This document shows, piece after piece, positions 1,235 to 17,510 of a stretch of DNA of 64,000 bases. A program made the translations under genes and the position numbers. The notes beneath the pieces are model-generated. The model was not told the origin of the DNA, searched no databases, and saw nothing but the letters and a program-made list of their open reading frames with translations. The stretch is from Malacoraja senta (lineage: Eukaryota): NCBI GenBank assembly GCA_038087875.1, contig JAXLNO010002060.1, positions 1 through 64,000 of the forward strand. The letters run 5' to 3'. Positions within the stretch are counted from its first letter, which is position 1, and each line of letters begins with the position of its first letter.

Positions 1235-1910
1235 TCAGGGCGGGGATTTATTCATGAGCAGAAGCACTGAGGTGAGCGGATATTTCACCGCGCTCTTCAC
1301 CTGCTCCCTGAACTTGGACTGGGTCACCGCGTAAATAAATGTGTTGGTGCAGCAGCTGAGATTCCTCAGCAAATACCCGACGTAGTTAAAGATATATTGA
1401 GAATCATTCAGATCATTTCCAACTCCTGTGATCTGATAATAGACGAATTCTACAACATTCGTCAGCCACAGGAGGATGAAGCTGCCGGAGATGGTGAACA
1501 GTAAAACCATAGACCTCCTCCTGCTCTCCATCTCCGGGTCACTGCGGTTCTCCCCCTTGCTCTCACCCCTCAGCCCCTTACGGACCCGACTGGCCACTAA
1601 AATGTGGCGGACAGTCAGAGCGTTGAGCAGCAGGATTACAGCGAAAGGGAGGAACGGAGTTAAAACCGTGTCGATCCAGTCAAATGCCACCCACCCGGGG
1701 TCAGTGTAATAACTGGCCACTATGGCACAGCCCCACGGGACATTGTCGATGATATACCAGGGTTCCCGTGTGAAGTAGCGGGGAATGTTTTTCACACAGA
1801 ACAGAACGCCGGCTGTTACCAGAACCACAGCCGCAGTTTTCCCGGTGCAATATTTAGTTTTCAGCTTCTGGCAACAAATGGCGACAAAGCGATCAAAGGT
1901 GAAAGTGACG
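1235..1910 (-). CDS. GPCR exon 2, 3' piece (TM3 DRF motif to C-terminus)
   Basis: ORF track 1235-1927: VTFTFDRFVAICCQKLKTKYCT...WIDTVLTPFLPF...SFILLWLT...CCTNTFIY; stop at 1237-1235. Confidence 0.93.
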
Positions 1911-2101
1911 ACTTCCGGTTGCGACATGCTCTGCTAGCAGTCGCAAACTTTTTAGCTCCGCTGAAAAAATCGCGATTTTTCGCGTTAAAATCGGGTCTGG
2001 AGGTCGGGACCGTTTTTAAAAACTTACCGGAGCTTCATGTCGCGGTGCTGATGACGTCATCAGTAAGCGCCGCGATTTTAACGGAGGGAAAGTCATTTTA
2101 A

Positions 2102-3097
2102 ATGAAAAGTACATCTCCAGGTCAGAGCCCACAGAGGAAAATCTCAAAACATCTGCTAAAGACTCTGGAACAGCAAGAAACTTCAGAACTGACCTCTGGA
2201 GAGGTCTCTGGAATGGCTACTCGATCTGCAAAAGAGAAAACCGAAATGGAGGACTTAAGAAACTCGGTAAGAGATATCAAAAATGATATGGAAGCTGGGA
2301 ACAGTAAATTGATAGCCGGTAATGATAAAATACTTGAGGGTATTGAGGCTCTCCAAAAAAGAATTGAAGGTGTGGAAAAAGGACTATCGATAAAAATTGA
2401 AAAGGTGGCAGAAGAGACCACAAAGATGTTTGAGGCTGTGCACGAAACTGTGGCTGCAAATGCATCTGCAGTGAATGATTTGGAAGCTGCTGTGGAAGTG
2501 ATGGCTGGAGAGATGCAGACTATGAAGTCAGAAATAGATAGTCTCAAGAACCAAGTCACAAAGGTTTCGAATAAATGTGTTGACCTAGAAGCTCGCTCAA
2601 GACGTCAAAATATAAGAATACGTGGTGTAAAAGAGGGAGCTGAGGGGGACAATGTTTGTGAGTTCGCTGCCAACCTAATTAAACACGTACTGAAGCTACC
2701 AGAAGTACCTGTAATTGAAGTAGCACATCGACTCCCCAGATTTAAATCAAGATCTCAAGGAGAACGTGCCTACCCACGACAGATCATAATTAAACTTCGG
2801 GATATCTCAACAATGGAAGCGCTGATGAAAAAAATCAACCACGGAGAGAAGATGATGTACAGAGGTGATACTATTAAACTCCTACGGGACTACCCTTATG
2901 AGATTGAGCAAAAGAGAAGAAAGTTCTCACAGACCAGAGAAGTTCTTTATGGTGTTAAGGGAGTTTTGTGTGGAGTGTTTTACCCGGCTAGAATGCGTAT
3001 CACCTTTGAGGGAGTGTCAAAAACATTCACTAATTCGGATGAATCTCTCAAATACGCTCAAGAAATCGCGACTAAGGCTGCATCAACTGGAGACTGA
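2102..3097 (+). CDS. L1-A ORF1p (coiled coil + RRM/CTD), 331 aa
   Basis: Heptad-rich N-half, then DLEARSRRQNIRIRGVKEG, HR, RQIIIKL, RDYP and YPARMRI motifs typical of L1 ORF1p. Confidence 0.95.
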   Translation: MKSTSPGQSPQRKISKHLLKTLEQQETSELTSGEVSGMATRSAKEKTEMEDLRNSVRDIKNDMEAGNSKLIAGNDKILEGIEALQKRIEGVEKGLSIKIEKVAEETTKMFEAVHETVAANASAVNDLEAAVEVMAGEMQTMKSEIDSLKNQVTKVSNKCVDLEARSRRQNIRIRGVKEGAEGDNVCEFAANLIKHVLKLPEVPVIEVAHRLPRFKSRSQGERAYPRQIIIKLRDISTMEALMKKINHGEKMMYRGDTIKLLRDYPYEIEQKRRKFSQTREVLYGVKGVLCGVFYPARMRITFEGVSKTFTNSDESLKYAQEIATKAASTGD

Positions 3098-4316
3098 AAA
3101 CCAAGACGACATGAACAAATGAACTTGCTTATTCTTCCAACAAGAATATCACAAGGAAAGTGAATTAACTGAACACTGATTTTTTATTTTTTATTTGACT
3201 TCAAGCAACAGATTCTTAGTGAGACGTGGCTAGACATTATTATCTTCGCTGGAACATTGTGCTATGTAATTCAAGGACACTACGTGCTCAAACGAGGAAA
3301 ACCTGATAACGGGACGAACTGCTGGGCTGAGAGTGAAAAACATCACATGGCTTATATTGTTTATAAAAAACTGAAAAAACTGAGAACTAATAATAATTAA
3401 CAATTAACAATACTAATATAGAAATAGCAATTGAAATAGATAAAAAATGTGCAGTCTGCTCTGTTTAGCAGATAACAGCAAGTGCTATGCAGCTCGAGAG
3501 TGGAGGGAGGGGGAGACCGGGTACCTGGCATAACTCCAGGAGCCAGACTCCCGTTAACCCTTCCAGCGAACAGCTCATTTTTAACAATATTAAAATCAAT
3601 TTAAAATAGTTAAGAGATAATATACACTCGAGGTTGATATGAAAAATATATACGGCTTATATAGTTTTACAAAATGCTGAGAATTAATCATAATTAATAA
3701 TTAACAATACTAATATAGAAATAATATTTGAAACTGATAAAACTGTGGTGCCTGCGTCATAACGCAGACAGCAGTTATCACCTATGTTCGCAGCTCGTGG
3801 AGAGGAGAAGAGATCAGGCACCTGGCACAATTCCAGGAACCTGACTCCGGTTAATCCACTCAGTAAACCGCTCACTTTAACAATACTAAATTCATTTTAA
3901 AATAGTTAAGAGATAAAGAGTGAGTAGGATATGGAATCGAATACATTTGACATATATATAAATTGTAACTGGGTGAAATAGAACTGAATTGGAAACGGTA
4001 ATGACCCCATAGATTTTGGGTAATAAATACAGCGGGGCTAACTTTATACCAACTACGCCGGAAGCGTTATGGATGTCGTACCCCACAGACGAGTGGGCCA
4101 CTCACTACGGTGTTGAAATTTTAGACACCGTAAATTTATTTGATTTATATATATATTTTTTTTTAATCACAATATGTCACATCTGTGTGTTTTTTCTTCA
4201 AGGACAATCGCGCAGGAGAACTACCAAGGAAGTCTATAATAGAAATACTCCCAAAATAACCAGAGTCCGGAGGTATGAACGCACCACAATAATTAAGGTC
4301 ATTAAAATTGGTAAAA

Positions 4317-16200: not shown

Positions 16201-17052
16201 CAATGGGATAGACTAGGAATTAAAACGCTTGGTGACTTGTATGAAACCGGAAAATTACTTTCATTTCAACAATTACAAATAAAATATAAACTCGGAAATA
16301 ATCAATATTTTAAATACTTTCAAATATGCGACTATTTGAAAAAATATATAAAAGATCATCATAATAACCCAGCAGATGTACTGGACGAGGCAATGCAGAC
16401 AAAAGCGGAATCAGCAAACTTAATATCATATTTGTACAATATTATCTTAAATGTACAAATACCATCTACGGAGGGTATCAGAAGAGACTGGGAACAAGAG
16501 TTAGCCATTAAAATTTCAAAGGAAAGTTGGAATGAATACTTATTAAAAGTACATAAATGCTCGATTAATGTAAGACACACTTTAATACAATTTAAAATTT
16601 TACATAGATTATATTATTCGAAAACTAAAATTCATAAAATTTTCCCAAACGTATCATCTATTTGTGATAAATGTCAATCCCAAGAAGCAACTATAGCGCA
16701 CTCATTTGTCTTCTGTACAAAAATTCAAAAATTTTGGAATGAAATTTTTGAAATCTTTACAAAGTTATTTAAAACAAGACTGATACCCAAAGCAGAATGG
16801 ATTATCTTCGGAATAACGGAAGATGATCCAGAACTAAATGTGTTTCAAAAGAAATTAATGGATTATGGGTTAATAACTGGAAAAAAGCTAATTCTAAAAT
16901 TTTGGAAGAAGGCTCCAATACCAACTATAAATATGTGGATTTCAAATATGTTTGAAACACTACACCTTGAAGAGATAAGACTCCTCCTAGCAGGTAAACC
17001 AGATCACTTCCACCTGACGTGGTCTGCATTTATAGAATTATTACAAACATAG
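13258..17052 (+). CDS. L1-B ORF2p (EN+RT); as assembled, the first ~30 codons carry three +1 homopolymer frameshifts
   Basis: ATG at 13258 is homologous to L1-A 4317. The SWNIRG motif is read out of frame (in-frame TAA at 13324); the frame is open from 13369 to the stop at 17052 with all EN/RT motifs. Confidence 0.92.
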
Positions 17053-17484
17053 GGTGCAAAAGTACTTTAAAAAAATAAAAAATTGAGGTCGGGTAAGGGG
17101 GGATGATAGTTGAAGAGTTGGTATGTCCTATTTACGTGATGCTCAAAAAAAAAACATTTGTTTTTCTTTTTTTCTCTCTCTCTTTTCTTTTCTTAGGGCC
17201 TATTTCTTAACTCCTTTTTTTTTTTGTCTTTAATTTCGCTTTCATAGGGTCCTCGTCCTTTTTTTTTGTTTTTTTTTGTTTGTTGTTACATTTTCTACAC
17301 TTTTCTACACTTGCACTTTTTCCTTCACTTTCTTCTCTCTTTCAATCTTTTCTTTCTTTAGCGTAAAAAAAAAATAAAGGGAGTACATTAATTGTAAGAA
17401 GATATAAATGACGAGTATTAATGTATGTGGCTGTGATGTAATGTACTTCTAATAAATAAAAATTAAAAAAAAAAAAAAAAAAAA

Positions 17485-17510
17485 AAATATTCATAAAGCT
17501 TTTCCCACAT
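17485..17510 (-). CDS. GPCR exon 1, 5' piece (ATG to TSD; MWEKLYEY)
   Basis: ATG at 17510-17508 in context GAGACAATG; ends in the TSD copy AAATATTCATAAAGC (plus strand) next to the L1-B poly(A). Confidence 0.85.

Follow-up and report, generated by a model that had tools for sequence, protein, structure and literature searches.

The locus holds a single receptor gene, read from the minus strand, and two L1 elements, called here L1-A and L1-B, each of which interrupts its coding sequence. The window is the whole 64-kb stretch of skate DNA that was analysed; Table 1 lists the features by their positions in it. The preliminary description of this DNA placed both elements in coding sequence, antisense to the gene and flanked by perfect TSDs of 15 and 16 bp, and each of these points is confirmed almost to the base. 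L1-A splits exon 2 in antisense, and exactly two copies of its TSD, AAAGGTGAAAGTGACG, are present in the window, at 1895 and 8505. L1-B, also antisense, sits 11 nt past the start codon, and its TSD, AAATATTCATAAAGC, likewise has exactly two occurrences, at 11169 and 17485.

Table 1. Features of the receptor gene and of the two elements inserted in it
Feature	Position	Strand	Remarks
GPCR exon 2, last 676 nt	1235..1910	(-)	VTFTFDRF.. to the stop at 1235-1237
TSD-A, left copy	1895..1910		16 bp, exact
L1-A	1911..8504	(+)	6594 bp, full-length, both ORFs open, A-rich tail
L1-A 5'UTR	1911-2101	(+)	
L1-A ORF1	2102-3097	(+)	followed by a 1.2-kb spacer
L1-A ORF2	4317-8108	(+)	from the ATG at 4317; 1263 aa; followed by 3'UTR and A-rich tail
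TSD-A, right copy	8505..8520		16 bp, exact
GPCR exon 2, first 232 nt	8521..8752	(-)	TM1-TM3, ending ..CSVWF
GPCR intron	8753..11118	(-)	2366 nt, GT..AG
High-copy non-L1 repeat in GPCR intron	9229..10588		~1.36 kb; two palindromic units; missing from sister introns
GPCR exon 1, last 65 coding nt	11119..11183	(-)	followed by donor GTAAGT at 11118
TSD-B, left copy	11169..11183		15 bp, exact
L1-B	11184..17484	(+)	6301 bp, full-length, A-rich tail
L1-B 5'UTR		(+)	~194 nt
L1-B ORF1	11378-12448	(+)	followed by a spacer
L1-B ORF2	13258-17052	(+)	from the conserved ATG at 13258; longest ORF 13369-17052; followed by 3'UTR and poly(A)
TSD-B, right copy	17485..17499		15 bp, exact
GPCR exon 1, first 11 coding nt	17500..17510	(-)	ATG at 17510-17508; 5' of the L1-B site

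The gene before the insertions was rebuilt by a script that takes out both L1s and one copy of each TSD. On the minus strand, 76 nt of coding sequence in exon 1 and 908 nt in exon 2 then join into 327 codons with a lone terminal stop, between a donor GTAAGT at 11118 and an acceptor ending in CCGCAG. The joined and spliced protein served as a frame check only, and the homology searches were run with the exon pieces. These pieces match the Pfam model 7tm_1, the distal piece of exon 2 with an E-value of 6.4e-11, and the N-terminus, MWEK..., aligns at the protein level with that of the skate family member P0002. There are 153 alignment columns conserved at 90% or more in 71 full-length relatives, and the rebuilt protein retains 152 of them. 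With its open frame, its GT..AG intron and these residues, the gene is indeed the clean 327-aa 7TM ORF, with canonical splice sites and no further lesion, that had been described. Such a state suggests that this copy was constrained until recently, and that it was still functional, or had only just escaped constraint, when the first L1 arrived.

The gene has two exons, the first of about 25 codons and the second of about 300, around a single intron, a layout that appears to be that of the GPR139-like family. At E<=1e-10, the gene has 1885 relatives, and the named ones all come from sharks, skates and rays. The best named matches, at 70-82% identity to the exon pieces, are labeled 'GPR139' in Rhinoraja, Mobula, Hypanus and Heterodontus, a label that is an automatic annotation of these relatives only and implies no one-to-one orthology with the human gene; the top protein match of all reaches 90% identity (contigs P0001 and P0018). 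Judged by sequence similarity, the gene encodes a rhodopsin-type GPCR and belongs to the GPR139-like family of chondrichthyans, and the number of relatives bears out the earlier statement that this family is expanded and multicopy in cartilaginous fishes. Our literature search found no paper on an expansion of GPR139 in these fishes. The chemoreceptor-like GPCR families OR, V1R and TAAR evolve by birth-and-death, in clusters that are rich in TEs. The GPR139-like family shares with them its large size, its lineage-specific character and the coexistence of intact and dead copies; TE insertion is one of their routes to gene death, as it is for the skate gene. However, families of that type lie in tandem clusters, whereas the skate copy is solitary in the window.

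L1-A and L1-B are L1-clade non-LTR retrotransposons, both by the layout of ORF2, with its N-terminal APE-type endonuclease, central RT and Cys-rich C-terminal region, and by the hallmarks of TPRT: A-rich tails, nicks between a T-run and a purine, and TSDs whose lengths, 16 and 15 bp, fall in the usual span of about 7-20 bp. Both contain the Pfam domains Exo_endo_phos and RVT_1, with a weak zf-RVT. Residues 15-1260 of the L1-A ORF2 are collinear with residues 8-1247 of the human L1 ORF2p (E 1.8e-186); among the 8000 top-word candidates that were scored in a protein search, the best match has 53% identity, and the nearest relatives, all at or below this value, include teleost RT proteins. In Pfam, ORF1 of L1-A has coiled-coil-type matches only, and ORF1 of L1-B matches Transposase_22 with an E-value of 0.0031 and 18.2 bits, below the cut-off of 22.4 bits. 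The two elements belong to distinct lineages: their nucleotide identity of 80% extends across 3.9 kb and covers ORF2 only, their ORF1 proteins are homologous with 42% aa identity (E 1e-79), and their 3'UTRs differ. As to lineage and length, the claim of two different full-length L1s stands, but ORF2 of L1-B is broken by two adjacent stops, at 13324-13329, within a short out-of-frame stretch near its start. L1-B is therefore full-length but not intact.

On the primed strand, the nick sites read CCTTT/GA and ATTT/AG, both of the generic L1 endonuclease type TTT/R. This short motif is all that the two target sites have in common: their sequence contexts are unrelated, and their positions in the gene differ. 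A single complex event can be rejected, since each insertion has its own TSD and 2.7 kb lie between them. The copies of the TSDs are identical at 31 of 31 nucleotides. The preliminary description called both events recent, and this is retained with a change of emphasis: TSD identity bounds the age only loosely, and better evidence of youth comes from L1-A, whose ORFs are intact.

Does the position of the two insertions point to a preference? Given two insertions in the gene body, the probability that both fall in coding sequence is 0.086 by length, 0.15 by the count of TTT/R sites, and 0.24 when the repeat in the intron is excluded. That both are antisense has a probability of 0.25 by chance, and is uninformative. 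The intron is free of L1, as had been reported, but about 1.36 kb of it consists of another repeat, of very high copy number; with p at about 0.09-0.24, the absence of L1 from the intron is a weak argument for a preference for this family, and was rejected. The expected number of double hits in the family was computed as F x (N x 984/G)^2 / 2, taking 2.5 Gb for G, 300-1000 genes for F and an assumed number N of young insertions. For assumed values of N, the expectation is ~0.0006-0.002 at N=5,000, 0.01-0.03 at N=20,000, and 0.2-0.8 at N=100,000. A double hit within 984 bp of one gene is improbable per gene, which counts against coincidence.

About 33% of the window is L1-derived, and it contains many minisatellites and other TE ORFs. 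There is no second GPCR in the 64 kb, which leaves one family member there, and the other ~47 kb hold no further young copy of L1-A or L1-B. An L1-A-like 3' fragment lies at 50396-50914, in non-GPCR DNA. Positions 724-19954 are free of N runs. Logan contigs of ~100-150 nt from four sequencing runs were placed on positions 8205-11483. In these contigs, the non-L1 part of this interval is multi-copy at 90% identity or more; the intron repeat has a depth of 1e6-4e7, and joints from 9228 to 10588-10603 are found in all four runs. The word shares of organisms B-F with the locus range from 0.40 to 0.46; since they may largely mirror the intron repeat, they are no proof of an orthologous locus. As a separate observation, depth over the L1-B 5' end (11184-11483) is confined to organism A (runs X1 and X2), with B and C showing almost none; over the L1-A 3' end (8205-8424), organisms A and C have depth and B has almost none. 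Depth is not to be read as copy number here.

The reading that we favour, and that we hold to be probable, is that of two independent L1 insertions, coincidental rather than targeted, in a paralog that was dispensable, where the second hit was neutral. Two recent and canonical TPRT events would have struck one member of the GPR139-like family; their source would be two concurrently active L1 lineages of the skate, and the receptor family, which is very large, would be turning over fast. The first insertion would have abolished the reading frame. With the frame already lost, the second would cost nothing, and could persist. Coincidence is favoured by heavy recent LINE activity in skates, by a family with many dispensable targets, and by a neighbourhood rich in repeats and poor in genes; a look-elsewhere effect also contributes, since a scan flags any striking pair. 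None of these amounts to targeting. The anatomy, the TSDs, the tails, the type of nick site, the intact ORF before insertion and the distinctness of the two L1 lineages are observed, and from them we infer the order of events, the neutrality of the second hit and the lack of targeting. The preliminary description left the choice between a redundant paralog and an L1 preference, and it is partly supported: the first fits all the observations, and the second, be it by sequence or by chromatin, finds no support at this locus.

There is also the possibility, which we consider unlikely, that GPR139-like loci, or the repeat-rich domain around this one, form a hot spot of L1 integration or retention; open chromatin in the germline, the geometry of replication forks or a low recombination rate could be the cause, for example. 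In that case, the family would carry an excess of L1 hits, and L1 would account for a measurable share of its gene deaths. Two young full-length L1s in a gene body of 3.35 kb, against none in the rest of the window, are what such a hot spot would produce; the chance estimate per gene stays low except at a very high N, and the two elements have the same orientation. However, with one family gene in the window, there is no local replication of the pattern, and a retention bias in repeat-rich DNA is not specific to the family and blends into chance. The stronger proposition, that young L1s are over-represented in the GPR139-like genes of this skate because their chromatin is accessible or because they lie in a regional hot spot, is more doubtful still.

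Less credence again goes to an artefact, in which the two insertions would be heterozygous on different haplotypes, or the contig chimeric. Polymorphism is conceivable for these two young insertions, and skates are highly heterozygous (1.6% in the little skate, PMC10115646). However, the interval 724-19954 shows no N run, and the 3' junction of L1-A and the 5' junction of L1-B are only 2.7 kb apart; one long read across this spacer would phase the two, and a false join would presumably need an overlap confined there.

Least probable is the targeting of a conserved motif of the family. The insertion point of L1-A lies in one of its most conserved stretches (..CSVWFTVTFTFDRF..), and a motif-directed element would thus find its target in every paralog. 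Some L1-clade elements, those of the Tx1 group, are indeed site-specific inserters into repeated targets. The Tx1 group belongs to the same superfamily as the skate L1s, with an APE-type endonuclease and an RT, but its elements use one defined sequence and position in a repeated target, whereas the skate L1s used two unrelated ones. Two different lineages would both need the same preference; the L1-A ORF2p is collinear with that of human L1, which is non-specific; and the L1-A-like fragment, together with older L1s, lies in non-GPCR DNA. A specificity of the Tx1 type was accordingly rejected, and the earlier suggestion of sequence targeting of the receptor family is, with generic nick sites in unrelated contexts, largely refuted.

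The two insertions can be set beside known cases. De novo L1 insertions in exon 14 of the human factor VIII gene are an example of coding-exon L1 mutagenesis. The mammalian exonic insertions and those of the skate share an L1 of full or nearly full length, TPRT, a TSD of ~15 bp, a poly(A), a T-rich nick and a destroyed frame. In the skate, however, two L1 lineages are found in one small gene, and the target comes from a large family whose members are dispensable, whereas the mammalian comparison is a single-copy essential gene.

In non-mammalian vertebrates, many diverged L1 families are co-active, with few young copies per concurrently active family, according to the study of Boissinot and Sookdeo (2016, PMC5381506). 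The skate shares with this pattern two diverged L1 families, both recent, with short conserved 5'UTRs. That study covers lizard, frog and fish, with no mention of cartilaginous fishes, and the copy numbers of L1s in this skate may far exceed those of the families it describes (PMC10115646). Our literature search found no paper on L1 in skates.

The locus offers a clean and datable natural example, from a cartilaginous fish, of a gene killed by retrotransposition. It shows at least two diverged L1 lineages active at a similar time in the skate, one of which, L1-A, still has both its ORFs open. Were an enrichment of L1 in the family true, TE activity would be tied to how a large receptor repertoire, as yet undescribed, turns over. 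Among the causes of death of GPR139-like members, L1 would in that case rank as quantitatively important, and it would drive their birth-and-death; this locus would be the visible tip of that process.

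Two L1 elements, both on the plus strand of the window, each split one coding exon of the same GPR139-like receptor gene: coordinates and reading frame bear out what the preliminary description had claimed. The gene frame was checked by taking out in silico each L1 together with one copy of its target-site duplication (TSD). The restored frame has 327 codons with zero internal stops, and canonical GT..AG splice sites, again as claimed. Database and domain searches used the gene pieces singly, not the joined product: the pieces match Pfam 7tm_1, and have 1885 relatives with E<=1e-10. 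Every named relative is a shark, skate or ray protein, labelled "GPR139" by automatic annotation; the top relative, which has no name, is 90% identical, and the top named skate protein, 82%. Conservation was scored against 71 full-length relatives, with 153 columns conserved at 90% or more. The window copy really departs from them at 1 of the 153 (F to V), and two further apparent departures are interrupted codons, one at the exon 1/exon 2 junction and one where L1-A inserted. Because the conserved columns are kept save for this one real departure, the gene was still constrained up to roughly when the L1s inserted.

Features of the receptor gene, the two L1 elements and their surroundings
Feature	Position	Strand	Details
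GPCR start codon	ATG at 17510	minus	
GPCR exon 1, coding		minus	76 nt; donor GTAAGT at 11118
GPCR intron		minus	2366 nt; acceptor ..CCGCAG
GPCR exon 2	to stop at 1235-1237	minus	908 nt
L1-A	1911-8504	+	6594 bp
L1-A ORF1	2102-3097	+	
L1-A ORF2	ATG 4317 to 8108	+	1263 aa, no interruption of frame
L1-B	11184-17484	+	6301 bp
L1-B ORF1	11378-12448	+	
L1-B ORF2	conserved ATG 13258 to 17052	+	interrupted near start, open thereafter
Minisatellite	18412-19342		27-bp x34
Minisatellite	19595-19951		35-40-bp x9
Minisatellite	21410-22841		25-bp x59
Minisatellite	24289-24506		30-bp x7
Minisatellite	24758-25132		32-bp x12
Minisatellite	27567-27872		109-bp x2.8
N runs	19955-20161, 23061-23315, 25133-25354		
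RT ORF with ALKBH8_N-like tail	26234-27406	+	mobile-element remains
Tyrosine-recombinase (Phage_integrase) ORF	38771-39634	+	mobile-element remains
Older degraded L1	43522-50914	+	includes L1-A-like 3' fragment 50396-50914
L1 ORF2 C-terminal piece	62391-63442	-	mobile-element remains

L1-A, within exon 2, is flanked by an exact 16-bp direct repeat at 1895 and 8505, and L1-B, within exon 1, by one of 15 bp at 11169 and 17485; neither repeat has a third occurrence in the 64 kb. The perfect TSDs first described stand. Both 3' ends carry A-rich tails. The nick sites on the primed (minus) strand, CCTTT/GATC for L1-A and ATTT/AGAC for L1-B, are ordinary L1-endonuclease sites. Their sequence contexts are unrelated and their locations within the gene differ: L1-B entered 11 nt past the A of the ATG, and L1-A at coding position 308, just ahead of the DRF motif, where TM3 ends.

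The ORF2 protein of L1-A aligns end-to-end with that of human L1 (E 1.8e-186), and endonuclease and RT domains are found in both elements. L1-B is full-length, yet not intact as assembled, because its ORF2 contains two adjacent stops (13324-13329). They fall where the frame is briefly shifted from that of L1-A: within 13258-13368, two small length differences between the elements displace about 35 nt, including the WNIRGIN endonuclease motif. Outside this interrupted start, 1,240 codons are open. Nucleotide identity between the two elements is 80% across 3.9 kb of ORF2 and 71% in the first 226 nt, their ORF1 proteins are 42% identical, and pairwise comparison gave no alignment between their 3'UTRs. 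They are distinct lineages, active at about the same time, a pattern that PMC5381506 describes in non-mammalian vertebrates.

Both 5'UTRs are short, about 190 nt (1911-2101 in L1-A, 11184-11377 in L1-B), and share conserved blocks although the elements have otherwise diverged: GACTTCCGGT, with an ETS-like core, at the extreme 5' end, and the palindromic, CRE-like GCTGATGACGTCATC about 40 nt upstream of the ORF1 ATG. These blocks are candidate internal promoter elements. The spacers between ORF1 and ORF2 are unusually long, about 1.2 kb in L1-A (3098-4316), where a segment of a few hundred nt is duplicated, and about 0.8 kb in L1-B (12449-13257); all frames of both contain stops. Among contigs of four sequencing runs, from organisms A, B and C, L1-B-type 5' ends (11184-11483) of at least 90% likeness appear only in the runs of A, and L1-A-type 3' ends (8205-8424) in those of A and C, with hardly any in B, depth here not being copy number. 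This distribution hints that the two lineages differ in age or species range.

The intron, as first reported, holds no L1, but it is not pristine: 9229-10588, about 1.36 kb, is a repeat of very high copy number (contig depths add up to 1e6-4e7) with two copies of a palindromic unit, at about 9598-9800 and 10240-10431, whose arms of 47-56 nt are 96-98% complementary. Contigs from all four runs connect 9228 straight to 10588-10603, and sister introns therefore lack the repeat. In the short Logan contigs, the locus is multi-copy at 90% identity or more. Upstream of the receptor's ATG, a run of minisatellites begins after about 900 bp.

If two L1s lie within the 3.35-kb gene body, the chance of both falling in coding sequence is 0.086 when reckoned by length, 0.15 when TTT/R sites are counted, and 0.24 without the intron repeat; with such values, the missing intronic L1 is no argument for targeting. 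Family-wide, by our own arithmetic, the expected number of double hits, F x (N x 984/G)^2 / 2, was calculated for G = 2.5 Gb, F = 300-1000 genes, and assumed numbers N of young insertions. It comes to about 0.0006-0.002 for N = 5,000, 0.01-0.03 for N = 20,000, and 0.2-0.8 for N = 100,000. This chance expectation is raised by the repeat-filled window, about one third L1-derived and otherwise rich in minisatellites and other TE ORFs; it is raised too by a look-elsewhere effect, as any such pair would be flagged when many windows are scanned.

The best explanation, and in our judgment a fairly probable one, is an ordinary pair of L1 insertions: the two would have occurred independently, in one dispensable copy among the many of a huge family, and the second would have been neutral. 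A regional or chromatin preference of L1s for such loci is a less probable alternative. No N runs occur between 724 and 19954, and it is quite improbable that the assembly is a haplotype chimera, with L1-A and L1-B not on one chromosome. Sequence-specific, Tx1-like targeting of the gene family, proposed earlier, is essentially rejected: the nick sites are generic, the two target sequences are unrelated and differ in their position within the gene, and the L1-A-like 3' fragment at 50396-50914 is outside GPCR sequence, as are older L1 remnants at 43.5-50.9 kb and 62.4-63.4 kb.

Gene death by exonic L1 insertion is a well-known kind of event. The double hit is a curiosity, of interest only if a genome-wide enrichment of L1s is shown.
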